Shown: in pieces, positions 6,290 through 54,639 of the stretch
Layout: every line of letters starts with the position of its first letter
Position numbering within the stretch: position 1 is the stretch's first letter
Sequence record: PP885688.1
DNA: 64,000 nt
Direction: 5' to 3' (one strand)
Notes under the pieces: generated by a model
Databases searched by the model: none
What the model saw: the letters and a program-made list of their open reading frames with translations, nothing else
Told to the model about the DNA's origin: nothing
Translations under genes and position numbers: made by a program

Positions 6290-6762
6290 TAGATACGTGC
6301 TCCTCGCACCCTGAGGGCCAGCATGACGTCCGCGTCCATCGGAGGATGGTTTCCCAGCACACAATCCACAAGCAGCTTGCGCAGCGGCTTAGGATCGTTC
6401 CCTTCGCGAATAGCATCGGCCACCACGCGCACGGCGATACCACGGGAGACCGTTGGGCCCATCGTCTTCACGAACGCGCCCCACACCCCTCCTATGTCGT
6501 TGTTGATGGCATTCACGCAGTCGTTGATGACTGGCGTCTCCAGCTTGTAAGAGAGACCCAGCGTCGTCGCAGTCCGCTCCATGGAGGAGAGATCCGGAAT
6601 GACCAGGGTGAACTCACGATTCGGATACCGGCGGAGGACGAGACGCTCGACCTTAGTGTTCGTCCAGGAGACGGTGACGGCTTCATTGCTGAGAGGCAGC
6701 AGAGGTTCCATCTCGATGATGCCGGGACCGCCGTAGTTCTTCTGGACCTTGAGAGTGATCAT
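6289..6762 (-). CDS. Hypothetical protein (157 aa)
   Basis: ATGA overlap with the BCS1-like gene. Confidence 0.7.
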   Translation of the reverse strand: MITLKVQKNYGGPGIIEMEPLLPLSNEAVTVSWTNTKVERLVLRRYPNREFTLVIPDLSSMERTATTLGLSYKLETPVINDCVNAINNDIGGVWGAFVKTMGPTVSRGIAVRVVADAIREGNDPKPLRKLLVDCVLGNHPPMDADVMLALRVRGARI

Positions 6763-7988
6763 GCCTTACCCCTGGAAGCCATAGCCTGCGCGTCGGCAAT
6801 CGTTGTCTGCTCGGGCAGGGAAGCGCGGAACTCCTCCCATGACTTCTGCGGGAAGTACTCGGAGACCTTGTCGTAGAACCGGCGGAGCTCTTCTTCGCGG
6901 GCGAAGTCGACCACGAACTTGCGATCGATCCGGCCTGAGCGAACCAGTGCGGCGTCGATCTTCTCGGGCTCGTTCGCCGTCATGAAGATGATCCGGTCCT
7001 CACTGGCACCGAGACCGTCGATCGCATTCAGCAGATCAGACATGGTGATGCGTGCGTCCGATTCGCTCTCACGCGTCTGGGCGGCGGCGATACAGTCGAT
7101 ATCCTCGAAGACGACGATGGATGGCTTGGAGCACTGGTTGAGCAACTGGGACAGGCGCTCTCCATCCATACCCGTCGCCTGTAATGCCACAACGTAGACC
7201 GGCAGTTTCAGATGGGACGCGAGAGCGAGGATCATCGTAGACTTGCCGGTGCCCGGAGGTCCGGAGAGCTGGTAGCCCTTGCGGTACGGGAAGCCAAGCG
7301 CAGCGTACGCGTCCTTGCTCGCGAGGAACTTTTTGATATCGGCAACGATCTCGTCAATCAGCTCCGGCGGATAGAACGTGGTGTCGAGCTTTCGCGGCGA
7401 TATGGGCGAAGGCTCCCAGTTGCCATAGAGGTATCTGTAGAGGTCGACGTGCGGCGGCATGTTGGCGAGATAGTCGGCCTGGGCCTCGGCGAGGATGTCC
7501 ATGATGATCTCCCGGCGACGCGTGAACCATACCTGGATCCGCAGCCAGTGCATCTTCTTCGTCGTACCGGCAGCAGCTCCGGCAGGTGTAGCTTCATCCG
7601 GCCAGTGGTCGATGATCATCGGCAGCTTGTGCTTCCAGCGCATGTAATAGGTGCCATACGCGGGGATCAGACTGTAGCCGGGGCTGGATCCTTTGTGCTT
7701 GCGCTGAGAGGGTGAGTCGTCGTTCCGTTCCTTATTGCGGCGGAGCAGAAGAGCGCTGATACCCCGCGTCTTGAGGTGCTTCTCGACCCAGTGGCTCACC
7801 CATGCGTAAGCCTCGGGGTCGTCGTTGTCTTCCACGGTGATCGTCAGGCTGACTTTGTTGATGGCCCAGCCGATGGTGTGCTTGTAGATGAAGTCCCAGG
7901 CAGATTTGAGGCCGCCCGTCACCACCCCGACGCCAAGAATGGCCCAGGGTGGCACGGACTTCAGGAAGGCGGGTGATGTCAGAGGCAT
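6759..7988 (-). CDS. BCS1-like AAA+ ATPase (N-terminal TM, BCS1_N-like domain, AAA)
   Basis: N-terminal hydrophobic segment; TITVEDNDDPEAYAWV; Y.ALGFPYRKGYQLSGPPGTGKS; VVFEDID; LLNAIDG; FMTAN; DAALVRSGRID. Confidence 0.85.
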   Translation of the reverse strand: MPLTSPAFLKSVPPWAILGVGVVTGGLKSAWDFIYKHTIGWAINKVSLTITVEDNDDPEAYAWVSHWVEKHLKTRGISALLLRRNKERNDDSPSQRKHKGSSPGYSLIPAYGTYYMRWKHKLPMIIDHWPDEATPAGAAAGTTKKMHWLRIQVWFTRRREIIMDILAEAQADYLANMPPHVDLYRYLYGNWEPSPISPRKLDTTFYPPELIDEIVADIKKFLASKDAYAALGFPYRKGYQLSGPPGTGKSTMILALASHLKLPVYVVALQATGMDGERLSQLLNQCSKPSIVVFEDIDCIAAAQTRESESDARITMSDLLNAIDGLGASEDRIIFMTANEPEKIDAALVRSGRIDRKFVVDFAREEELRRFYDKVSEYFPQKSWEEFRASLPEQTTIADAQAMASRGKA

Positions 7989-20888: not shown

Positions 20889-21460
20889 GAGGTGGCCTCG
20901 GTGGTGCAGCAGGGTTCGTGCAGCATGTTGCTCTTCATCCCGCAGGCCTTATGCTCACCGTATTCCGGTGTGTGACAGAGGCACGTGCAGGTGGGTGCGG
21001 TCTTCGGGATAAGAGCGAGGATCTCATTACCGCGAACCTCGTAGAGGTGGGCTACGTCGTAGCAGTTGGTCTCGATGACGGTGCGAGCGAGGCGTGCGGC
21101 GCTGAAGCATACCTCGGCGGCGTCCTTGACTCCGGCGTTGTAGTTCGCGACGCGGCGCTCTGCTTCTACCTGGTTCGTCTTGGCACGATGGGCTGCGATC
21201 TCACTCAGAGCTGCACGGATTGCGATGACGTCGAACTGGCTCAGGATGTGTTCGTGGACCCCGGCTGCCATACGTGCGAGCCGTTGGATCTGATCGGCGG
21301 ACGTCGTAGCCCGCATCTTCTCCTCGTACTCTTCTCGCCGCTTCTTCGTTTCCTCTTCGTAGCCAGGTGTGGGAGCGCCGCTCAGAAAGCGGGCTAACCC
21401 TTCGGGCGTCGGGTCTCCCGCGACGTTGATCTCGTGACGTGCGTACTTTGGAATGCGCAT
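20885..21460 (-). CDS. Hypothetical protein (191 aa)
   Basis: TGATG coupling to the ligase C-half. Confidence 0.65.
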   Translation of the reverse strand: MRIPKYARHEINVAGDPTPEGLARFLSGAPTPGYEEETKKRREEYEEKMRATTSADQIQRLARMAAGVHEHILSQFDVIAIRAALSEIAAHRAKTNQVEAERRVANYNAGVKDAAEVCFSAARLARTVIETNCYDVAHLYEVRGNEILALIPKTAPTCTCLCHTPEYGEHKACGMKSNMLHEPCCTTEATS

Positions 21461-22413
21461 CAGTCCGCCCACTCCACATCAAGGCCACCACCGGCGGCCT
21501 TGAGTCCGTACTTCACAAATTGCTCATTGATCCAGTCAGTGTCGAAGTTGGGGATGTTGAGTTCCTTCGCCTTCTTCAACTTCGTCGCGCCGGGCTCGGT
21601 GCCGACGAGGAGGTGTGTTACCTTCTTCGTCACGCCACTCTTCGAGACCGCGCCCAACTTCACGAGCTGGTTGGTGATGTACTCACGGCTGCCGATCTCG
21701 TAGAACTCACCGGTGATGCAGAAGGCAACGCCCGCCAGAGGGGAACCCTCGACGACCGTGGGCTGCTCAATCGGAGTCGGGCGTACGCCTGCAGAGTAGA
21801 GACGCTGACAGATCAGCGAACCCTCGGCGTCGAGCGCGAACTTGTTCAGTTCTGCCCGCTTGTGGAAGCCGATTCCCTCGATCTCCTTGATCTCCTGCAC
21901 CAGTCCAGGCAGATACAGCTTTGCCGGAAGTGTGAGCATGCCCTCAGAGGTGAGCTTGTGTTCCTTGGCGATCACCTTACCGAGAGTGATGCCGATCATC
22001 GGAATACCAAGGGCACCGATCCAGCGATCCCACCCGGCAGTCTTTGCACGCTCAGCGGTCTCGATCATGTTGAGGATCGCGGCGGCGGCGAGACCACGCT
22101 TACGCATGACAGCAGAGAACTTCTCCTCACCGTGTTTCTCCAGGGCAGCCGCGCATTCGTTGAGGAACTCAAAGAGGTCCGCGATGTTGGTGATGTAGCC
22201 AGCCTTCGCGAGCGTCGCAGCCATCTCAGGCCCAAGACCTTCGATCTCCAGCAGCTTGCGGTCGGCGATGTAGGTGAGCATGTCGGCAACGCGGCCAGCA
22301 CAGAGAGTGTTCTCGCACCAGTGAGTGATGATCTGAGACTTGGGCTCGGTGTATTCGACGATGACGGAGCCGCAGTCCGGGCAGAGTGTGGGGGCGTTGA
22401 TAGGGGTTGTCAT
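21460..22413 (-). CDS. ligA: NAD-dependent DNA ligase, C-terminal half (Zn finger, HhH, BRCT)
   Basis: CPDCGS...WCENTLC zinc finger; IEGLGPE, ALGIPMIG and IEGIG HhH motifs; FCITG...SGVTKKVTHLLVG.EPGATKLKKAKELNI BRCT. Confidence 0.9.
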   Translation of the reverse strand: MTTPINAPTLCPDCGSVIVEYTEPKSQIITHWCENTLCAGRVADMLTYIADRKLLEIEGLGPEMAATLAKAGYITNIADLFEFLNECAAALEKHGEEKFSAVMRKRGLAAAAILNMIETAERAKTAGWDRWIGALGIPMIGITLGKVIAKEHKLTSEGMLTLPAKLYLPGLVQEIKEIEGIGFHKRAELNKFALDAEGSLICQRLYSAGVRPTPIEQPTVVEGSPLAGVAFCITGEFYEIGSREYITNQLVKLGAVSKSGVTKKVTHLLVGTEPGATKLKKAKELNIPNFDTDWINEQFVKYGLKAAGGGLDVEWAD

Positions 22414-25374: not shown

Positions 25375-25631
25375 TAGCGACCCCACAATTCGCGGTTCTT
25401 ACCGTACAACCGCTTGTAATAGCGCCGACGCGCGTAGGCCTGGCGCAGGGCGGACTCAACAGCATTCCGCCGAGGATCCTCCGCCTTCAGAGATCCGAGC
25501 GCCGTCCGAAATTGTGTCACCCGATAGTTCAGTTGATGGCGAAGTGACAGGCCGATTGAATAGGCATAGGTGTTGGGCCAGGGTATGTGCGTGATGATCC
25601 ACGTGGGTAGGTACTCCAGACTATTCTCCAT
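25374..25631 (-). CDS. Hypothetical basic protein (85 aa)
   Basis: Overlaps the stop of the ligase N-half. Confidence 0.6.
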   Translation of the reverse strand: MENSLEYLPTWIITHIPWPNTYAYSIGLSLRHQLNYRVTQFRTALGSLKAEDPRRNAVESALRQAYARRRYYKRLYGKNRELWGR

Positions 25632-26763
25632 CGAGCACCGCTGTGATCTGCGGGATCACATCCCCGCTGCGCACGACCTCGACACGGCTTCCGATCTCGA
25701 GTTTCATTGCACGGATCCACGAGAGGTTGTTCAGCGTCACACGCTCGATGCTGGCACCGGCGAGAATCACCGGCTCGATCACACCGACCGGCGTCAGCTT
25801 GCCCTGGCGGCCTACCTGCCAGATGACGTCGAGCAGGACACTCTCGCTCTTCGCGTTCTGTGTCTTGAACGCGACCTGGAAGTTGGCGAACTTCGAACCT
25901 AGGCCTAGCTCGCGACGGCGGGCACAGCTGTCGATCTTGATGACGATACCGTCGCGACCGATCTCCTCATCCTTGTTGTCGAGCAGCTTGACGAACTTAG
26001 CCAGCTGAGCCAGCAGCTCCGTCGCATTGGCGACTGCGACATCGTCCGGTGCGTCGAAGCCAAACAGAATCAAGTCACTAAGGCGAGTGGAGGCGGAGTC
26101 ACCTGATTCGATGGATGAGTCGAGTAGGGGAGCGATGACCTCCCACGGCTTGAACTGAATGTCGCGCTTCTTGACCTCTTGGAGATCCTTCAGCTTCATG
26201 GTTCCGGCGACAAGGTTGCGCGTCGACATGTACGGCTTGCCTCCTGCCGCCACGATCTCCGCGTTCAGCTTGGCAAGGGTTGACTGCTTCATCACCAGCT
26301 CGCCACGGATCTCGAGGTCGATGCCGTAGCCGATTTCGTTGGGGATGGCGAAGATCACCTGGACTTGGGGGAGAATCGACTCACCGGCGTCGCCGTCACC
26401 GCGTGTGACTGCCTTGACCAGTTTGCCCTTCTCATAAGTGAGTGAGCAGCTGACGCCGTCATACTTCGAGCTGAGAGTCACAGTCTGACCTACGTGCCTC
26501 TTGTACCAGGTAAGGAGGTCGTCCACGCTGTAGACGTTCTCGATCGAGCGCATCGGATGAGCGTGGGGGATACGGCCACCGGCGTCGGTGCCTACGGTCG
26601 TGAGTACGGTGGCTCCGGAGGCTTGGGATGGGTTCAGCTTGACCAGTGTCGCGAGTTCAATCTCAGCCGCGTCATACTCGGCGTCGGACATGATGGGTTG
26701 ACCGGCGTAATAACTTTCTCTTGCAGCTGTCAGCTTTTGATTCAGACTTTCCACTGTTTGCAT
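25621..26763 (-). CDS. ligA: NAD-dependent DNA ligase, N-terminal half (Ia, adenylation, OB)
   Basis: YYAGQPIMSDAEYD, SSKYDG (active-site Lys), TRGDG, EIRGE, TRNLVAG, DGIVIK, WQVGRQGKLTPV, VRSGDVIP, then a stop. Confidence 0.92.
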   Translation of the reverse strand: MQTVESLNQKLTAARESYYAGQPIMSDAEYDAAEIELATLVKLNPSQASGATVLTTVGTDAGGRIPHAHPMRSIENVYSVDDLLTWYKRHVGQTVTLSSKYDGVSCSLTYEKGKLVKAVTRGDGDAGESILPQVQVIFAIPNEIGYGIDLEIRGELVMKQSTLAKLNAEIVAAGGKPYMSTRNLVAGTMKLKDLQEVKKRDIQFKPWEVIAPLLDSSIESGDSASTRLSDLILFGFDAPDDVAVANATELLAQLAKFVKLLDNKDEEIGRDGIVIKIDSCARRRELGLGSKFANFQVAFKTQNAKSESVLLDVIWQVGRQGKLTPVGVIEPVILAGASIERVTLNNLSWIRAMKLEIGSRVEVVRSGDVIPQITAVLDGE

Positions 26764-39925: not shown

Positions 39926-40205
39926 TTGCGTTCTCCGTGGTGGGTTGTGCAGCGTGGGTGTATGGGCTCCAGCCGAGGGGCATGGGAGCGTGAGTCAGTC
40001 CCTTGTCCTTGCGGGCCTCGAAGAACTTGGTGAGGCAGGGCATGCAGGTGCAGTAAGGGAAGCGGATGCCCTTGTAGCGCTTGAAAGATCCGCAGGGTTT
40101 CTCGTTGCGGAAGTCAGTGCGTATGAGGTACGCGGCCACCTTCTTGCTCTTACCCTTGGGCTCAGCGACGACGACATACTGCGGTTGATCAGGCATGCGC
40201 GACAC
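39918..40205 (-). CDS. Hypothetical basic Cys-containing protein
   Basis: CTCMPC motif; overlaps neighbours. Confidence 0.55.
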   Translation of the reverse strand: MSRMPDQPQYVVVAEPKGKSKKVAAYLIRTDFRNEKPCGSFKRYKGIRFPYCTCMPCLTKFFEARKDKGLTHAPMPLGWSPYTHAAQPTTENASV

Positions 40206-47158: not shown

Positions 47159-47926
47159 TACGTGGGCTCCTAGACTGATGCGGCTTCGTCGCCGCTGAAC
47201 AACACGACAAAAAGGCGAACGATCAAAAGCAATCGAATCAAGGAGATCAGGGGGTCGCGTGAACCCGATAGTTGCATGATCGAATCTTGTAAAAAGCGGC
47301 CCCTCACTCGGGAGGGGCCAATCTGCCTTGGATCTCTCCGGTTAGGAGAGGCTTCTGCAGTGTGCGTTCTAAGCCGCTTCACTGCAAACTGATAAGCGCG
47401 AACGCTAATGTGTGAGGTAAAGGAATCTGGCTCGGGAACTGGGACCAGCGAGCGCATGGGACCTGGAGGCGGATCAACCATGTGCTCGAAGGTTATGTCC
47501 CAGCCCTCGGGCGGTCTGCCGGTCCAGCCGGGCACAGCAAAGCTGCGGGGATCGACTGCTTCCCTGCCTGATTGCTTACGGCTTGCCTGGGGAGGACGTA
47601 CGGAAGACACCGAGAATTGCTGGCCCAAATCTTCTTGCATGTGCAACTTTCTAAAGGGACTATCCACCGTGGTTGCTGGGGGACAAGTAAAAAGTTATGC
47701 CAGATTTGTGGGTCGCGTCAAAGTAATATCCGTGACAAATATGTGATATCTCGGCGGAAAACTGCTCATTTGTAAAAGTTTAGTCTTGTGGAAACTTTTT
47801 TGAGAGCTGCCACGGACTCGTCCGCTAATCGTTCATGATCCGAACTAACTTCCAACTAAAGTTGTAGGCAGGTAAATCCGGATTGGCCGATCCCCTGCTC
47901 CGGATCAGTCGATCTCCAGCGGGGGC

Positions 47927-48292
47927 TTACAGTTCCCCGCCCCCGGCGAGGAGTTTGGACATACCTTCCATTAGCTCCGCGAGCTTCTGCCGCTGGGTCG
48001 GATCGGCCAGGACCTTCTCCGCTGGCGACGCACGTTGGGCCAGAATCACCGGCAGAGCCACCTCCAGCAGCCCGTTGACGATGTCGGACATAGCAACGGG
48101 CTTCAGCTTCTTGGCCGCCTCCTGAAGGTCGCTGTGGAGCTGCTTCTCACAGCGGAACGACCAGGCCACGAGAACGGGTCGTCGGGTACGTCGAGAGTTT
48201 GCCGAATCGGTGATCTTGCGTATCAGCTCCTCGCCTTGAACCAGATCAGCGAGTGCTGGGCCGGGTTTCGTGAGTTCGAATGGCTTGTCCAT
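47927..48292 (-). CDS. Ribbon-helix-helix (CopG/ParG-like) regulator
   Basis: VAWSFRCEKQLHSDLQEAA...AMSDIVNGLL; TACACT 6 nt before the ATG. Confidence 0.65.
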   Translation of the reverse strand: MDKPFELTKPGPALADLVQGEELIRKITDSANSRRTRRPVLVAWSFRCEKQLHSDLQEAAKKLKPVAMSDIVNGLLEVALPVILAQRASPAEKVLADPTQRQKLAELMEGMSKLLAGGGEL

Positions 48293-48655
48293 GCGGGCAG
48301 TGTACCACCTAGTGCGATGTATGTCGCGCTGTATAGCGGCAGAGGGTTCCACCACCATCGTACACAAATCGAAACGCTAAACCCCTTTCGGGGAGGAGTG
48401 GGCGGCTTGGCGCTATACATCGCGCTATACGTCTGTATTTCATAGGCCCGACTACGACAGAAGTGGTCTAGTGGTATGGAAGTGGTCTTCGCTTTTTAGA
48501 ATGTATAAAATTTGATGGCATCAAACGGCTTATTTGTGGAAAGCCTGTGGGAGGGATGTGGACGCTGTGAATCGCGCCCAGGTTGCCCTCGGTGCGACCG
48601 ATGGCCACCTCAAGTATGTGGTCCTATTTCATTGATAATAGGTGAGTTCGGAAAC

Positions 48656-48862
48656 GGTGCACTTCTGCGTATGAACGCCTAGGCAGGCAGGAGTTTCCAT
48701 CGATCCGGGCTCAATGGATAGAACACGGTGCACTTCCACGTAGAACGGTGCACTTCTGCGTATGAAGCCAAAAGCGCTTTGGTGCACTTCTGCGTATGGA
48801 TCCGTGCACCTCTGCGTAGGCTATATATAGAAGCAGTATTAACATTAGTTTTTTAAACCACT
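48656..48862. repeat. Iteron-type replication origin: 5 direct repeats GTGCACTTCTGCGTA plus AT-rich tract
   Basis: Copies at 48656, 48727, 48747, 48781 and 48803, then CTATATATAG...TTTTTTAAAC, directly downstream of repA. Confidence 0.85.
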
Positions 48863-48887
48863 ATGTGGAGCAGTAGTGGGTGTCGCT

Positions 48888-49913
48888 TCACTCCACCGAC
48901 GAAGACGGTAGGAATTTTCTTTTTGGATGACCAGCGACAAACTCGGTGCCCACTGGGAACGGAACAATCGTAATTCCCTTCCCTGTAACGGTGACATCCA
49001 GCAGACTGAAGGGATGTGGCATCAGCTTGATGATCCGTACTACTTTACGGAAGTTCGCTACCCAGCGATGCGGGTTTTTGTCCTGATCGTCGAACTGCCG
49101 TTTGATCTGTTCCCAGGTGATGAGGGTGTCCGTCTGACCGACGAAGCTGCGGTAGTAGAGGAACAGGGCATAGTCCAGCAGCTGGGGTTGGTCGGCAAAC
49201 TGATCTATGAGGTCGAACGGCACCGGCACCGATTTCTTTGGAGCCAAAAACTGGGCGAAGAACGTGGTACCCAAGCGAGCCATCTCGGCGATCGCGAACA
49301 TCTTCTTCGGTGTGTCCTTGACGACCCACTTCCCTGTTTTCTCGTCGACCGCACCGTTGATCGCCGCCGCCTCCAACAGAGGAGCTTTGATGGTGTGAGT
49401 CACCTCTCTGTCGCCGTCCTTCTTCACGTAGGTGATCGAGATGTTCATGTACGCTAGCCGGATGAACCGGGCCTGGGCGATCTTGTGATTTTTTCCCGAA
49501 CGTTCCCATTTCCCGAAGAGCGCCAGGTACTCATTGACGTCCTTCCAGTCGAGCAGGGTTGACTGGGCCCGCACCCCTTTGTTCGTGATGAAGTGCGCCA
49601 TGTTCCGGTCCTTCCCATACGGGAGGGGGATGTTCTCATCGGTCACAGAGAAGGTGACGGTGACCTTCTCGTTCTTGCCGGTGCGAGCAGTGCGGGTGAC
49701 CGGCTTGGAATCCTTGCGCGGCTTCAGCGGCAGGCCGCAGAGGATGAGGATCTTCGCGAGGTACAGCGCTTCCCCGCTCAGACCCTTGTTCCAGGTAGCC
49801 ATGAGCGTTTCAACCTTCTTCGCGTTGGCCGCTTCCTGCTCTTTGCGCCAGTCGCGATGGCCCGGAAGGATGGCCTGCACATCCTCCGGACTGATCTTGC
49901 TCAGCTCACCCAT
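48888..49913 (-). CDS. repA: Plasmid replication initiator, RepA_C (IncW-like) family
   Basis: LCGLP, IPLPYG..R, VPVPFD, LDYALFLYYRSF, I.WEQIKRQF; adjacent iterons. Confidence 0.8.
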   Translation of the reverse strand: MGELSKISPEDVQAILPGHRDWRKEQEAANAKKVETLMATWNKGLSGEALYLAKILILCGLPLKPRKDSKPVTRTARTGKNEKVTVTFSVTDENIPLPYGKDRNMAHFITNKGVRAQSTLLDWKDVNEYLALFGKWERSGKNHKIAQARFIRLAYMNISITYVKKDGDREVTHTIKAPLLEAAAINGAVDEKTGKWVVKDTPKKMFAIAEMARLGTTFFAQFLAPKKSVPVPFDLIDQFADQPQLLDYALFLYYRSFVGQTDTLITWEQIKRQFDDQDKNPHRWVANFRKVVRIIKLMPHPFSLLDVTVTGKGITIVPFPVGTEFVAGHPKRKFLPSSSVE

Positions 49914-50122
49914 CGGTCAACTTTACTCCACGCATAGAGGTACCTTGCGGACTTTTCAGTCCGTTGCTGGGTGCCAACTTAGGTACTACCTTTAACGGTT
50001 CCTACTTACCCTTGTGCCTGGTCGACACATGGAACGACATCCAGCGCCAGCGATTCCAGGGTTTGATGTGTGACGGCGGACGGTCCTCACAGTGCGGGCA
50101 GACACAGGGGATGCCCAGGTGA

Positions 50123-50716
50123 TTACCGTATCGACGAGCGGTATATAAGCTCCGCGAGGCGGCGGGCAAATTGCCTTGGAGGTAGATCGTATTCAACCGC
50201 AAAAGCCGTTGAAAACTGCTGGAATCTGCCGACGGCAAGGGCAAGGGTTGTTTCGGGGATACCATCTCCAGGAGATTGGAGTTCGGGTTCTTGCGCTTGG
50301 CGAGGGCGGGAAACGCTGCCGTTACTCTTCGGTTTTTGATGGGTGAGGGCTTTAGACTCCGGAGCGCTGACTGCTGACGTGCCATTGATCTGTTCTCTCT
50401 GTTTCCGATAGGCCACGGACGCGGCGGACGTACCCACCACTCCATGCGCTGTCCTGCGATGAATGCCAAGACCTGTCGGGCGATCGAACGTGCGAGGACA
50501 ATCAGGGCATTTATAGGTTGCGGGTTTCGGCGTTGGTGAAGCGAGTGGTGCAGGGGTTGGAGCAGTGCTGCCAGCGGCCAGTTTCTCCGCCTCTTTATTC
50601 TTCAACGCCACAGCTGTGCTGCCGGTGGCCTTGTGAACTTTCCTACGGTGCTTGCCCAGGAGACCTAAGGACTTGAATCCGCCCTTATCACACTCCGGAC
50701 ATTGGAGAGTATTCAC
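50123..50716 (-). CDS. Protein with two classical C2H2 zinc fingers
   Basis: CPECDKGGFKSLGLLGKHRRKVH and YKCPDCPRTFDRPTGLGIHRRTAH. The GTG start at 50716 is uncertain. Confidence 0.7.
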   Translation of the reverse strand: MNTLQCPECDKGGFKSLGLLGKHRRKVHKATGSTAVALKNKEAEKLAAGSTAPTPAPLASPTPKPATYKCPDCPRTFDRPTGLGIHRRTAHGVVGTSAASVAYRKQREQINGTSAVSAPESKALTHQKPKSNGSVSRPRQAQEPELQSPGDGIPETTLALAVGRFQQFSTAFAVEYDLPPRQFARRLAELIYRSSIR

Positions 50717-50779
50717 TATGTAGATCCAGCTTCGTACTAGAAATTCACTTCCAGTTGGAATATTACAACGCTTCAAGTG

Positions 50780-50788
50780 TTATCCACA
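50780..50788 (+). promoter_or_regulatory. Consensus DnaA box TTATCCACA
   Basis: Exact 9-mer in the divergent intergenic region within the replicon block. Confidence 0.45.
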
Positions 50789-50837
50789 AAGGCACGTGGG
50801 TGACTAGCTCGTCAATATCGAGCCTTACACTGGATCT

Positions 50838-51446
50838 ATGGCACCACCACGCACCTGGCTAAGTCGCGCAGAGGAGATACTTGAGGTCCTTCGAAAGATG
50901 AAGTCCTCACAGATCGACCGGCCCGCTATCGAAGAACTTTTTCAGCTGCAGCGCCGAGCCGCAATCACTCTGATGAAGCAGGTCGGTGCTCTCGCCGGTC
51001 GCGGTGAGGAGTTTCTGGTTGGCCGCCGCGAGTTGATCGCGTGGGTCGAGCACACCTTCAAAGCCGAGTCCGCGATCCTTGAGAGAAAGAAGTCGACCGG
51101 CGAAGAACTCTCTCGCAGTCTTCAAGAGGTGCAAGCGGTTCGAGCTGCGCTTCAGCAACAAGGTCGACCGCCGGTGCACTTCCCTCTCGTCGATGACGTG
51201 CTGCGTGCGACGTTCACTTCCCTTCCCTCTTCAGTTCGCGTTGAGCCAGGTCGGATCACAGTCGACTTCCCTGCCGACGAGCCCGAGGCGGCGCTCCCAC
51301 TTCTCTATGAACTGTCGATGGCGATTGCGAACGACTTCAGTGGGTTGCGCGAAATCTGCAACGTGACTCTCTCCACCGATGAGCTTCTCTCCGACCTTCA
51401 ACACGGCAAAGAGTCTGCTCTGAATTCCCTCTCATCAACTTTCTAG
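50838..51446 (+). CDS. Hypothetical protein (202 aa), possible N-terminal HTH, leaderless
   Basis: TACACT 6 nt before the ATG. Confidence 0.7.
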   Translation: MAPPRTWLSRAEEILEVLRKMKSSQIDRPAIEELFQLQRRAAITLMKQVGALAGRGEEFLVGRRELIAWVEHTFKAESAILERKKSTGEELSRSLQEVQAVRAALQQQGRPPVHFPLVDDVLRATFTSLPSSVRVEPGRITVDFPADEPEAALPLLYELSMAIANDFSGLREICNVTLSTDELLSDLQHGKESALNSLSSTF

Positions 51447-51481
51447 AAAAAAGTCTAGAAATCTAGATTATTTTCTAGAAA
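51441..51481. repeat. Cluster of four TCTAGA palindromes upstream of parA (putative centromere/operator)
   Basis: TCTAGA at 51442, 51454, 51462 and 51474 in an AT-rich tract. Confidence 0.65.
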
Positions 51482-51540
51482 ACAGTGGGTACCTCCTGAG
51501 CCACTTACGGGCGTAAGGCGGATCACCTAGTCTTGCGATC

Positions 51541-52206
51541 ATGGCAACCGTTATATGCGTCGCAACACAGAAGGGTGGCACGGGGAAATCCTCTACGGCC
51601 ATCAATGTAGCGTGCGCTCTGGAAGTCGCTGGATACCGCGTGATTGTTATTGATACGGATCCACAGGCGACCTTCTCGAAGTGGCACAAGAAACGTAAAA
51701 AGATAGGCCTAAACGGGTTCAAAGTTCTTGCGATCCCTAAGGGTCTACTGGATGACGAAATTCAGATCCTCCGGGATGATGAGAAGATCGACATCGTCCT
51801 TGTCGACTGTCCGGGCAACATCGAAGACATCACATCGACTGCCGTGAAGCTCTCCGATGCAGTGTTATCGCCGCTCAGGCCGTCTTCTATGGACATGTCG
51901 CACTCAGCGGACACCGTGCGGTTCATCAAGGAGATGCGCAGCTCCTATCCAGAGCTGCGATTCTTCCTCTTCCTGAACGCATCCATGCCGCGTTGGAACA
52001 TCTCACGCGACATGATTCCTGCAGTGCGTGACATGGTCAAAAACGAGCCTAAAACCGTGGTTTTGGACGCTAAGATCCCCCACGCCGTCGCTGTCGCTGA
52101 GTTCTTCGGCTCAGGTCAGTCGATCTTTGAGTACGCACCGAAGTCGGCTGCAGCATCCGCTTACAAAAAACTTACCAAGGAGATGATTCAATGCCTCCAA
52201 AACTAG
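51541..52206 (+). CDS. parA: ParA partition ATPase (type Ib)
   Basis: VATQKGGTGKSSTAIN, IDTDPQ, LVDCPG, SDAVLSP; no N-terminal HTH. Confidence 0.92.
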   Translation: MATVICVATQKGGTGKSSTAINVACALEVAGYRVIVIDTDPQATFSKWHKKRKKIGLNGFKVLAIPKGLLDDEIQILRDDEKIDIVLVDCPGNIEDITSTAVKLSDAVLSPLRPSSMDMSHSADTVRFIKEMRSSYPELRFFLFLNASMPRWNISRDMIPAVRDMVKNEPKTVVLDAKIPHAVAVAEFFGSGQSIFEYAPKSAAASAYKKLTKEMIQCLQN

Positions 52207-52586
52207 ATATTCGCGAGCAGGGAAGGGAAGAGGCGGAGGAACTGGATATCCCCGTGGTCCGTAACCTCGTCGGTAGCAACCGATCGTCAACACCAGCACC
52301 AGTAACGGCTTCGGCGGCTGCACCCGTAGAGGCATCAGCAGCTGTGGGTCCGCAGGCCGTCACGGAGGCGGTAAGGCCGCGCAACACCAAGAGGCCGGTC
52401 GACAAGCTGGCCAAGTTCGGGGTGGACTTTGAGGAGTACGAGCCGCTCAACGTACGTCTCCATAAGTGGGTCCATCGCGCATTGAACGAACGCATTTTGG
52501 AGATGAAGAAGACCAGAAAGATCAAGAAAGAGGAGATCGTCGAGCAGGCAATCATCCAACTTCTCGATCTGGTACCGCCAGAGTAG
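52191..52586 (+). CDS. ParG-like RHH centromere-binding partner
   Basis: Overlaps the parA stop; disordered N-terminus, then PLNVRLHKWVHRAL...KKEEIVEQAIIQLL. Confidence 0.7.
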   Translation: MPPKLDIREQGREEAEELDIPVVRNLVGSNRSSTPAPVTASAAAPVEASAAVGPQAVTEAVRPRNTKRPVDKLAKFGVDFEEYEPLNVRLHKWVHRALNERILEMKKTRKIKKEEIVEQAIIQLLDLVPPE

Positions 52587-52659
52587 GTGTGCGGTATGTG
52601 TGCGGTATCCCGGCCACGCTAACCAACGACTGGATTAGCCCGAAGTACCTGAGCCACAA

Positions 52660-52700
52660 AGAGAACCGCCCCATGAGAAGTCTCATGAGGCGGTTTCCTA
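52660..52700. terminator. Long hairpin between convergent genes
   Basis: GAACCGCCCCATGAGA-AG-TCTCATGAGGCGGTTTC. Confidence 0.6.
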
Positions 52701-52776
52701 TTGGATGGCCGACGCTGGTAGCTCCCAGCCATTTGACCGCCATTTTTTAGTCAGGGGCGGCACCATCCAAAGCTTG

Positions 52777-54639
52777 TTACTGGACCGTCTCCTCGATCCG
52801 GTTCTCCTCGTCGAGCGTGCCTTCAAACTGCGCCGTCTTCGGCTTCGGAATCGGATCGATCTCCTCCACCTTGGCGAACAGTTCGAGACAGCTTTCTTCG
52901 GTCAGTTCAAATTCGAGCTCAGTGAACGCAGGCGCAAGAATCGCAATCGCCTTGGCCAACGGCTCCATCGCTCTCAGCTGATCGAGCACACTCTCGTGTG
53001 TATCGGGGCCGATGACCAATGAGTCCGCGTCCGTGGGATTGAGCCAGTTCTCGGCCAGATCGAAGTACTCACTGAACTTCGGATTCTCGGCCTTGATCTC
53101 GTCGAGCAGGGAAGTGGGCGATGTCAACAGACGGACCAGCTGTTCCTCTTCGAGCTGACAGTATGGCGTCAGCAGCCGCGCCTTATGCGCGGTGAGGCGC
53201 TCTTCGAGGTTGGCGTAGCGCATGTAGAGGTGAGCGAACAGCGGGTTGCCCAGGATCTTCTCCATGATCTTCTCGCCGACATCGACCGAGGTCTCAGCCT
53301 CACCATCCGTCTCGCGGGTGATCGGGAGAATCTCCCCACTCTTGAGACCGGCGACATACTTCTGTGCCGAGATCGATGCATCCGTCAGCTGCTTGAACCG
53401 GCGCTCTTCGAGGCTGAGGCCTGAGAAGCGGATCTGGTTCATGTAGCCGAGGACCTTCATGATCATGTCGGTCTTCTCGATCGGCCACTGCGAGTTGTAG
53501 ATGATCTTGAGGATCTGATCACGCTCGAAGTCGGTGACGTCGATCGCCTTGTCCGCGATGCCGAGGGACTTGAGAATCTTGACTGCGGTGACGCGGAGCT
53601 CAGCCCGGTAGGTGAGCGCACGTTCCAACAGATCCACTTCCATGGCGACGCGCGGTGCATCTTCGCCGTGCCGGTCAGGGTCGTAGAGGGTGTTGGGATC
53701 GTCGAGCAGGACTGTCTCCTGCACGTTGGCCTCTTCCGCGAAGTCTGCGACGAGACCGAGCAGGCCGCCCTTGAGGATGGCAAAGAGAGTCTTCGCGTCC
53801 TGGTTCGGCACACCCTTGCGGTTGAAGTAGTTCGGGTATTCCAGACGGATCAGACCCCAGATGCGATCCTCCGACCAGTTCTCGACCGCGTGTGGTTTGT
53901 ACTGCGGGTAGGTCGAGATCTTCTCGCGAACCTGGTCCTCTTCGACCGGCGACAAGTATCCGTTCCAGTAAAAGAACTTGGGCTCAACCAGCTCGGCCAC
54001 CGTCCACTGCTGTGTGCAGCTCAGATGGTTTACGAACTCGGCAGCAGTCTCGTCCGGCCCGGCGACAGGGACCGTGGCTGACGTGCCCCATCCCAGTGCT
54101 TCCGTGATGGTGTCGATCGGGAGTTCCTTGACCGCACGTGCGGCAGCCTTTTTCAGACCGTTGTGAACGTCTTCCGGATAGTTTTCGAGGAGCTTCAGTG
54201 CGCCGAGGGAATCCTTGCCGCTGACACGCAGCCTGCGATTCGGGAAGAGCTCGTCGAGAGCTTCGATGATCGCAAACGCGCGAAGGACCTTGATCAGGTA
54301 GCGGCCTTCACCCAACATTTCGGCGTACTGCTGGAGACCTGCGAAGGATCCGGTGAAGGTACCGTCTGCGGTCTGAACCTGAACGCCCTGGCGAGCGTCG
54401 CCGCCGAACATGCTCTTCTTCTGGATGACGAAGAGGTTTTCAATCTTCTCAAAGCGGGGGTCGTGAACGATCTCCCACGTGGGTCCCAGTGTGTCGACTA
54501 GGCCTTTGGGCCCGAACAGGATCTGGTTGAGCACCTGGCAGTACTCGAAGTGGTCGGCATCGACTTCGCCGTCCGCCTGCTGATAGACGCGCTTACCGCC
54601 GTCCAGCAGACCCATAAGACTCTTCATTTTATCTTCCAT
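52777..54639 (-). CDS. Hypothetical protein (620 aa)
   Basis: Codon-biased ORF with GAGGA RBS and a class I motif; no motif recognised. Confidence 0.8.
   Translation of the reverse strand: MEDKMKSLMGLLDGGKRVYQQADGEVDADHFEYCQVLNQILFGPKGLVDTLGPTWEIVHDPRFEKIENLFVIQKKSMFGGDARQGVQVQTADGTFTGSFAGLQQYAEMLGEGRYLIKVLRAFAIIEALDELFPNRRLRVSGKDSLGALKLLENYPEDVHNGLKKAAARAVKELPIDTITEALGWGTSATVPVAGPDETAAEFVNHLSCTQQWTVAELVEPKFFYWNGYLSPVEEDQVREKISTYPQYKPHAVENWSEDRIWGLIRLEYPNYFNRKGVPNQDAKTLFAILKGGLLGLVADFAEEANVQETVLLDDPNTLYDPDRHGEDAPRVAMEVDLLERALTYRAELRVTAVKILKSLGIADKAIDVTDFERDQILKIIYNSQWPIEKTDMIMKVLGYMNQIRFSGLSLEERRFKQLTDASISAQKYVAGLKSGEILPITRETDGEAETSVDVGEKIMEKILGNPLFAHLYMRYANLEERLTAHKARLLTPYCQLEEEQLVRLLTSPTSLLDEIKAENPKFSEYFDLAENWLNPTDADSLVIGPDTHESVLDQLRAMEPLAKAIAILAPAFTELEFELTEESCLELFAKVEEIDPIPKPKTAQFEGTLDEENRIEETVQ

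Follow-up and report, generated by a model that had tools for sequence, protein, structure and literature searches.

A plasmid-type replication and partition module of Terriglobales kind in the genome of the jumbo phage Tunturi 5

The stretch of DNA analyzed here, referred to as the window, comprises 64,000 nucleotides (nt) and corresponds to bases 62,001 to 126,000 of GenBank record PP885688.1, the circular 308,711-bp genome of Tunturiibacter phage Tunturi_5 (Tunturi 5). Coordinates are given as window positions, which equal the record position minus 62,000. A tblastn search with the replication initiator described below and a megablast search with window positions 40,001 to 64,000 each returned one match, to PP885688.1 at 100% identity. 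Within the window, the block from approximately 47,930 to 52,980 is well supported as an intact and complete maintenance module of the type found in Terriglobales plasmids, situated in a jumbo phage. It comprises the gene of a predicted iteron-binding initiator (gp155), an iteron array directly downstream of that gene, a partition operon (gp157 to gp159) and a small gene of the ribbon-helix-helix (RHH) type (gp154). An earlier interpretation made from the letters alone (the sequence-only reading) had proposed a plasmid replicon and partition system embedded in a phage genome; the match to the record bears out the embedding, and the listed parts are intact and lie where they had been placed. 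All open reading frames (ORFs) and cis elements of the block are preserved, including four exact TCTAGA sites and three identical iteron cores.

The initiator gene, gp155 (48888 to 49913, minus strand), encodes a protein of 341 amino acids that is labeled "replication helicase" in GenBank. Direct searches with this protein against Pfam, NCBIfam, PHROGs, PADLOC and PDB sequences were empty, no match to the Pfam family RepA_C (PF04796) was obtained even at an E value of 0.1, and the sole match in a PDB search with a 66-sequence gp155 profile was spurious (E = 1.3). A word-indexed protein search recovered two Rep homologues only, against 217 relatives in an exhaustive HMMER search. Among the aligned relatives, RepA_C was matched by 17 of 66 and RPA by 10 of 66, all weakly (best, 3e-7). 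Using hhalign, a clade profile built from the six sequences closest to gp155 matched the RepA of pKUN4507_1, a bona fide RepA_C protein (92.7 bits to PF04796), at 97.3% probability (E = 2.8e-11, 252 columns) and the RepA of the IncW plasmid R388 (84.8 bits to PF04796) at 96.6% probability (E = 5.9e-10, 228 columns). The RepA_C or IncW-like initiator of the sequence-only reading thus stands as remote homology and falls as a direct Pfam assignment; since gp155 fails the Pfam threshold, we call it a divergent relative of RepA_C rather than a scored member. In tblastn searches gp155 also matched plasmid genes annotated as RepA, the best of them in plasmids of Granulicella tundricola (Acidobacteriota; E = 6e-26), and it shares 26% identity over 279 amino acids with the RepA of Granulicella plasmid pACIX905. 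Identity to the sampled relatives ranges from 41 to 58%, with the protein of locus L001 being closest (58%).

The AlphaFold2 model of gp155 (predicted local distance difference test [pLDDT] score, 90.4; predicted template modeling score, 0.86) displays a tandem winged-helix fold. Foldseek aligned the model with domains 2 and 3 of RctB, the initiator of Vibrio chromosome 2 (E = 8e-7), with RepE54-iteron complexes (E of approximately 2e-3) and with the Rep-iteron-DUE (DNA unwinding element) complexes 8aan and 8ac8; the RepE54 matches had probabilities of 0.94 to 1.00 and template modeling scores of 0.5 to 0.6 on the target. The predicted fold therefore matches those of RctB, mini-F RepE and the Rep of 8aan and 8ac8, without detectable sequence similarity; gp155 has an extra N-terminal helical segment and exceeds RepE in length. 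With the IncW RepA-oriV systems (R388 and pSa) and other RepA_C replicons, gp155 shares the homologous initiator identified by hhalign, and its clade and pACIX905 have direct iterons spaced at approximately two helical turns and adjoining rep. It differs from these systems in that it has no Pfam match, is approximately 24% identical to true members, belongs to a clade confined to Terriglobales Acidobacteriota in the collections searched and is part of a replicon located in a phage. By profile comparison and structural prediction, gp155 is a tandem winged-helix iteron initiator and a remote relative of RepA_C, not a helicase.

Repeat searches and comparison with related loci identified five iterons with a unit of approximately 19 to 23 nt (48653 to 48822, minus strand). 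Their 15-nt cores, all read on the same (plus) strand, start at 48657, 48728, 48748, 48782 and 48804 with 0, 2, 0, 0 and 1 mismatches, respectively, and span 48657 to 48818, three of them being identical over the full 15 nt. There are no other matches to the core in the 64 kb, where 1.49 would be expected by chance across the whole window. The five 15-bp iterons proposed by the sequence-only reading were all recovered, with a real unit longer than the one suggested. In the direction of rep the start-to-start spacing is 22, 34, 20 and 71 bp, and this four-plus-one layout and spacing is repeated in loci L001 and L002, with a common AAGTGCACC core. Seven relatives were fetched for comparison of the origin: L001, L002, L012, L013/L014, L015, pACIX905 and L016, the last being CP132936.1, a 138,912-bp replicon of Tunturiibacter gelidoferens, a member of the host genus. 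Each carries 4 to 13 direct repeats at a spacing of approximately 20 to 23 bp located 3' of the rep stop codon. Across these seven origins the position after rep is constant and the iteron sequence changes with lineage, as expected if iterons co-evolve with Rep. These comparative data are the strongest evidence for the predicted origin.

Two further observations concern the repeats. In pACIX905 (L004:4950-5730), the region 3' of the RepA gene holds thirteen repeats of 17 nt, many of them spaced by exactly 23 bp, which apparently represent an unannotated iteron origin. In the window, the 10-nt iteron core GAAGTGCACC occurs once more, without mismatch, at 51173 to 51182 (minus strand) inside the gp157 coding sequence; this copy may be a chance occurrence, as seven matches were found with one mismatch allowed against five expected.

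Additional elements of the origin were delineated by comparison with the related loci. The AT-rich tract anticipated by the sequence-only reading (48815 to 48868) separates the rep stop from the first iteron and is a candidate unwinding element; it peaks at 78% AT per 40 bp, and a content of at least 70% is reached in just 0.27% of 40-bp intervals of the window. The tract contains a CTGCTTC-TATATAG motif (48822 to 48840) that is kept in all seven compared origins. At 48535 to 48565 (minus strand) is a group of three elements that resemble DnaA boxes and have TCCACA or CCCACA as their core; two or three such elements occur at the equivalent position in L002, L012, L014 and L016 and, in weaker form, in L001, and this cluster inside the origin likely constitutes the putative DnaA sites. 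A conserved block of 30 nt with three ACCAC units follows at 48463 to 48492 (minus strand). It is 100% identical in L016 and L018 and 91% identical in L002, although the corresponding Reps are merely 41 to 53% identical. That the phage and the T. gelidoferens replicon have the same 30 nt despite diverged flanks and a diverged Rep identifies the block, by comparison, as a strongly constrained site. Most relatives share the order CTGCTTC-TATATAG motif, iterons, AT-rich stretch, TCCACA/CCCACA elements, 30-nt block and inverted repeats.

The consensus DnaA box of the sequence-only reading, TTATCCACA, is present as one exact copy at 50780 to 50788 (plus strand) in the divergent intergenic region between gp156 and gp157. 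We rejected it as part of the conserved origin: it lies 2 kb from the iterons, is missing in the seven related loci checked and occurs at chance frequency, with seven matches in the window against 6.3 expected when one mismatch is allowed.

The partition genes gp157, gp158 and gp159 form an operon that diverges from gp156. The parA gene of the sequence-only reading is gp158 (51541 to 52206, plus strand), which encodes a small ParA partition ATPase of 221 amino acids lacking an N-terminal DNA-binding extension. Residues 4 to 214 of 221 align with positions 1 to 203 of the 203-position model NF041546 (9e-45; 152.7 bits, short of the curated cut-off of 180), phrog_164 is matched at 1e-45, and a KGGTGKS motif occupies residues 11 to 17. 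The presumed centromere-binding partner of ParA is gp159 (52191 to 52586, plus strand), whose ORF and the end of parA overlap by 16 nt; on the 3' side of parA, a co-conserved small gene is also seen in L001 (33% identity), L016 (61%) and L013/L014. A strand-helix-helix pattern is apparent at the gp159 C terminus in the family alignment (A4). Searches of Pfam, PDB and PLSDB plasmids returned nothing for gp159, and comparison with the RHH family of gp154 (alignment A5) gave an hhalign probability of just 1.6%. The RHH partner of ParA in the sequence-only reading is consequently retained as a gene, whereas its RHH fold has no model match in Pfam, PDB or hhalign.

Directly 5' of parA, at 51442 to 51479, are four TCTAGA palindromes spaced by 12, 8 and 12 bp, accounting for four of the nine TCTAGA sites of the window. 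L001 has the same cluster of four ahead of its parA, and L016 and L020 match the region at 86% identity. This cluster, which the sequence-only reading does not list, is the best candidate for a centromere or operator, and could be an operator only. The first gene of the operon, gp157 (50838 to 51446, plus strand), encodes a protein predicted to combine a winged helix with a coiled coil: the AlphaFold2 model (pLDDT, 81) places a winged helix at the N terminus, followed by a long helix and a small C-terminal domain. Its Foldseek matches are weak (E of approximately 0.1) and involve the winged-helix regulators BusR, Rex, MarR and TubR; a PDB sequence search gave no match. Identity of gp157 is 84% to its counterpart on the T. 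gelidoferens replicon, 54% to those of L013/L014 and 43% to that of L001, and the gene is conserved beyond this ParA type, as the ParA of L013/L014 is just 26% identical. Between gp159 and gp160 lies a GC-rich, terminator-like hairpin of 14 pairs (52664 to 52695, minus strand), and a promoter scan yielded nothing useful. Type Ib partition systems are exemplified by ParF/ParG/parH of TP228 and par2 of pB171. By description, the Tunturi 5 operon resembles these in its small ParA without an N-terminal DNA-binding domain, its small 3' partner and its short upstream repeats, and differs in its conserved extra first gene, gp157, and in that gp159 matches no RHH model.

At the opposite side of the origin, gp154 (47927 to 48292, minus strand; the ORF could start as far upstream as 48367) encodes a small, predicted DNA-binding protein, the second RHH gene of the sequence-only reading. 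Homologues are found 3' of the iterons in six related loci (alignment A5), and the protein is 75% identical to that encoded at L014:4436-4801. The window protein itself has no direct family match. Two of the seven family members match Pfam RHH_10 at 2.7e-5, others match RHH_3, CopG antitoxin or RepB regulator models, and the best PDB profile match is the RHH antitoxin MazE7 (E = 0.14); the RHH fold of gp154 is supported by these similarities at the family level. Inverted repeats with half-sites TATAGCGC and GCGCTATA surround the gp154 start (48316 to 48433) and form a putative gp154 operator; their arms are 26 nt long and 81% complementary, and equal arms are present in L014 and L015.

Two zinc-finger-like genes lie between rep and the partition operon. 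A C2H2 zinc-finger protein, which we regard as accessory, is encoded by gp156 (50123 to 50716, minus strand; Pfam zf-C2H2 at 4e-8); it is found in L020 and L002 and is missing from plasmids L016 and L018. Just 5' of rep, and overlapping the 3' end of gp156, is an unannotated small ORF at 50002 to 50166 (minus strand; conserved part, 50005 to 50151) whose peptide has a conserved Cys-x2-Cys ... His-x4-His pattern and a weak Zn-ribbon match in Pfam (E = 0.058). Its identity is 87% to the L020 counterpart and 81% to that of L002; with plasmids L016 and L018 it shares 77% identity over 31 amino acids. L002 has it joined in frame to the gp156-like zinc-finger gene; it is unfused in the window, where it occupies another frame, and in L020, where it forms a separate stretch past the stop of the gene. 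The ORF could reflect the splitting of a gene or mark a frameshift site, or it could encode a small regulator of its own.

The arrangement of the module recurs in plasmid-like settings, with a gp157-like gene, ParA and a small partner diverging from Rep, followed on the other side by iterons and an RHH gene. The Terriglobales replicons CP132936.1 and pACIX905 and metagenome contigs L013 and L018 have the same gene order as the Tunturi 5 module; in contrast to Tunturi 5, type IV secretion genes are present and virion genes absent in such replicons. CP132936.1 encodes VirB3, VirB4 and a tyrosine recombinase, L013 encodes VirB3, VirB4, TrbC, CagX and TrbI, and further relatives of the module were found in Edaphobacter modestus and E. 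aggregans in addition to Granulicella pACIX905. No initiator of this clade was detected in other phages, either by tblastn of 50,697 phage records (in which only Tunturi 5 itself was found) or by a clade-profile scan of IMG/VR contigs. The possibility that the related loci are fragments of Tunturi-5-like phages was considered and rejected, as no other gene is common to the whole Tunturi 5 genome and L001, L002, L012 to L016 and L018 (L020 was left out of this comparison).

The par operon is 77% identical in nucleotide sequence to CP132936.1 over 2.2 kb (50826 to 52983). At the protein level, identity to this replicon is 86% for ParA, 84% for gp157, 61% for gp159 and 41% for Rep; codons with synonymous-only differences outnumber those with amino-acid-changing differences by 79 to 31 in ParA and by 76 to 32 in gp157. 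The third-codon-position GC content (GC3) does not tell the phage copies from the plasmid copies. Because the nearest relatives differ by part (L001 for Rep, L014 for gp154 and L016 for the par operon), the block is a mosaic.

Plasmid-homologous DNA extends from approximately 47,968 to 52,983, its right end being within the 3' end of gp160 and the hairpin at 52664 to 52695 lying inside it. No direct or inverted repeats of at least 10 nt flank the block, it has no mobility genes, and Rfam returned nothing within 46.9 to 53.0 kb. On the right, homology to the plasmid continues for approximately 400 bp past gp159, through the hairpin and into the last 69 or so codons of gp160 (52777 to 52983, minus strand), a hypothetical gene of 620 amino acids of which a 24-amino-acid remnant is 71% identical in L016; as the homology reaches into gp160, the right-hand recombination junction may lie inside this gene. 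At the left edge, approximately 770 bp between gp153 and gp154 (47159 to 47926) contain no annotated gene. The only long ORF in this gap (47170 to 47667, minus strand) has a low GC3 of 0.58 and no family match.

Tunturi 5, a jumbo myovirus, was isolated from tundra soil in Finland and purified from plaques; its particles were verified by electron microscopy, and it has 350 ORFs and 43 tRNA genes (PMC11924767). Its host, Tunturiibacter psychrotolerans X4BP1, belongs to the Acidobacteriota (PMC11924767), in agreement with the Acidobacteria-like host suspected by the sequence-only reading. The gene list of the whole genome includes terminase, portal, sheath, baseplate and capsid genes elsewhere; the element is not a megaplasmid, and the record is circular and has no chromosomal flanks. 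Tunturi 5 is a genuine virion-forming phage, represented by the complete genome of a purified isolate. Its annotated replisome consists of DNA polymerase, primases, a clamp and clamp loader, DnaB-like helicases, UvsX and single-stranded DNA-binding protein (SSB), and RuvC, which together with UvsX and SSB makes up a set of recombination-dependent replication genes, is annotated as well. Two further "replication initiation proteins" are listed, gp37 and gp261, the latter beside a DnaC-like loader (gp262). The neighborhood of the block is likewise rich in replication and recombination genes, with helicases at gp94 to gp100, a DnaB-like gene at gp174 and an SbcD-like gene at gp177.

We infer that the module provides the phage with episomal persistence, as a plasmid prophage or in a plasmid-like carrier state, and assign this interpretation a confidence of roughly 0.55. 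The identity of the initiator, the conserved architecture of the origin and of the ParA operon with its TCTAGA cluster, the intact state of all parts, the recurrence of the module in plasmid settings and the closeness of the par operon to a host-genus replicon all speak for it. It is favored also because a partition operon and a copy-controlled origin make sense only across cell divisions and because separate lytic replication machinery is present (gp261/gp262, gp37 and the full replisome). Moreover, no integrase is annotated among the 350 genes (this being a statement about annotation, with most genes hypothetical), so that any persistent state would probably be extrachromosomal. Under this model, monomers of gp155 would occupy the five direct iterons and melt the AT-rich tract beside them, probably assisted by host DnaA at the conserved TCCACA cluster, after which the replicative helicase would be loaded for theta replication; copy number would be limited by pairing of the iterons. 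For segregation, gp159, possibly together with winged-helix gp157, would bind the four TCTAGA sites 5' of parA, and ParA-ATP on the nucleoid would segregate the copies, while gp154 would regulate itself at the TATAGCGC inverted repeats. Most likely, the purpose would be to allow one round of replication of the circularized 309-kb genome in each cell cycle and its inheritance without integration, a carrier state being conceivable in slow-growing hosts, and lytic replication would be driven by the phage's own polymerase, primases, helicases and UvsX system.

Several points weigh against episomal persistence. Tunturi 5 has the self-sufficient gene content of a virulent jumbo phage, with 43 tRNAs, sigma factors and a polymerase of its own. 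The annotation of its 350 genes, most of them hypothetical, names no repressor, antirepressor or immunity region. Exact-sequence look-ups of Rep and of the gp94 helicase found no bacterial assembly or metagenome contig containing either one, and the purifying selection on the par genes could stem from the plasmid branch as well as from that of the phage. The only experimental data are of lytic infection cycles and plaques (PMC11924767).

Those lytic data fit an alternative in which the Rep-iteron unit starts early theta replication in an ordinary infection and ParA positions the DNA, with no plasmid state. Iteron initiators do serve lytic origins in some phages, lambda O at ori-lambda being an analogue, and the position of the block among the replication and recombination genes noted above would suit such a role, as would the report of Tunturi 5 as a lytic phage. 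Nevertheless, the module in its entirety, with its partition operon and RHH regulator, belongs to a type known from plasmids of Terriglobales, several of which have type IV secretion genes, and the initiator is absent from the other phage records searched and from IMG/VR contigs. A lytic cycle would also have other initiator and loader candidates in gp261/gp262 and gp37, as well as recombination-dependent replication through UvsX, RuvC and SSB, and it is hard to see what a one-step lytic burst would gain from a partition system. We therefore consider use as a lytic origin unlikely, while regarding it as the most serious competitor to episomal persistence.

The close relationship of the par operon to a host-genus replicon and the mosaic composition of the block could also mean that a fragment of plasmid backbone was captured by recombination and is carried without function for the phage, having so far not decayed; jumbo phages in general tolerate extra DNA. 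This explanation appears improbable given that every ORF and cis element is intact, that the origin is fully preserved even though Rep is only 41 to 58% identical to its sampled relatives, and that neither flanking repeats nor mobility genes point to a recent insertion. Least probable of all, we consider, is that the module serves to interfere with resident plasmids, destabilizing them by partition incompatibility (for example, to remove plasmid-borne defenses) or exploiting their partition proteins, which would accord with the near identity of ParA, gp157 and the TCTAGA region to CP132936.1 (86, 84 and 86%) alongside a different Rep (41%) and different iterons, but is purely inferential and would not need a full Rep-origin unit.

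Phage-plasmids are a recognized class, and episomal persistence of Tunturi 5 can be set beside known members. P1 has a RepA with 19-bp iterons at oriR, ParA/ParB/parS, a separate lytic replicon and no integrase in a genome of approximately 94 kb; its partition system is of type Ia, with a large ParB, and it has a defined C1 immunity system. As judged from this description of P1 alone, the logic proposed for Tunturi 5 is alike, with an iteron initiator and ParA for the prophage state, a distinct lytic apparatus and no integrase. Tunturi 5 differs in its small ParA, small partner and third gene (gp157), its size of 309 kb, its own replisome and its lack of a known immunity system. Among the persistent Escherichia jumbo phages surveyed, no paired plasmid replication or partition genes were found. 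A jumbo phage genome maintained as a circular extrachromosomal replicon has a counterpart in pBtic235 of Bacillus thuringiensis, a circular jumbo prophage-plasmid from a different phylum whose prophage state is established; the likeness is one of description (PMC9700832).

The sequence of Tunturi 5 and the ParA label are already published. The paper on the phage does not mention a plasmid replicon, and gp155 is mislabeled there (PMC11924767); a full-text literature search that paired phage-plasmids with Acidobacteria gave no paper with a title or abstract linking the two. The "replication helicase" label of gp155 in GenBank should be corrected. Other annotations in the window merit attention as well. 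The product of gp90 (6759 to 7988, minus strand) is labeled "major head protein" and matches Pfam BCS1_N (1e-13) and an AAA ATPase family (3.5e-22); because of these matches and of a second "major head protein," gp334, in the structural region, the label looks wrong. Beside it, the "tape measure" gp91 has no Pfam or PHROG match, and a 3.3-kb tape measure gene, gp257, is present elsewhere. Two genes, gp108 (21460 to 22413) and gp116 (25621 to 26691), are labeled as NAD-dependent DNA ligase; since gp116, an ORF of 388 amino acids, has adenylation and OB domains only, the ligase may be split or truncated. The annotation of Tunturi 5 also lists two ATP-dependent ligases.

No phage-plasmid is known to have been described from Acidobacteriota, a phylum whose first phage isolates date from 2025, and jumbo phages that bring their own replisome are as a rule regarded as strictly virulent. 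Tentatively, and as a proposal that is on balance doubtful, Tunturi 5 might be the first phage-plasmid of this phylum, a 309-kb myovirus with its own replisome that would switch to once-per-cycle, partitioned plasmid inheritance by means of a replicon exchanged with conjugative plasmids of the host genus, with a near-identical par system that would make phage and plasmid compete for segregation. The module itself is a record of genes passing between conjugative plasmids and a jumbo phage within one host genus. Development of genetic tools is a stated goal of the authors who isolated Tunturi 5 (PMC11924767), and Rep with the iterons and conserved flanks forms a delimited unit that could serve as a minimal replicon for Acidobacteria cloning vectors. 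For phages of slow-growing soil hosts, a plasmid-type origin joined to a partition operon would offer a concrete and testable mechanism of persistence.

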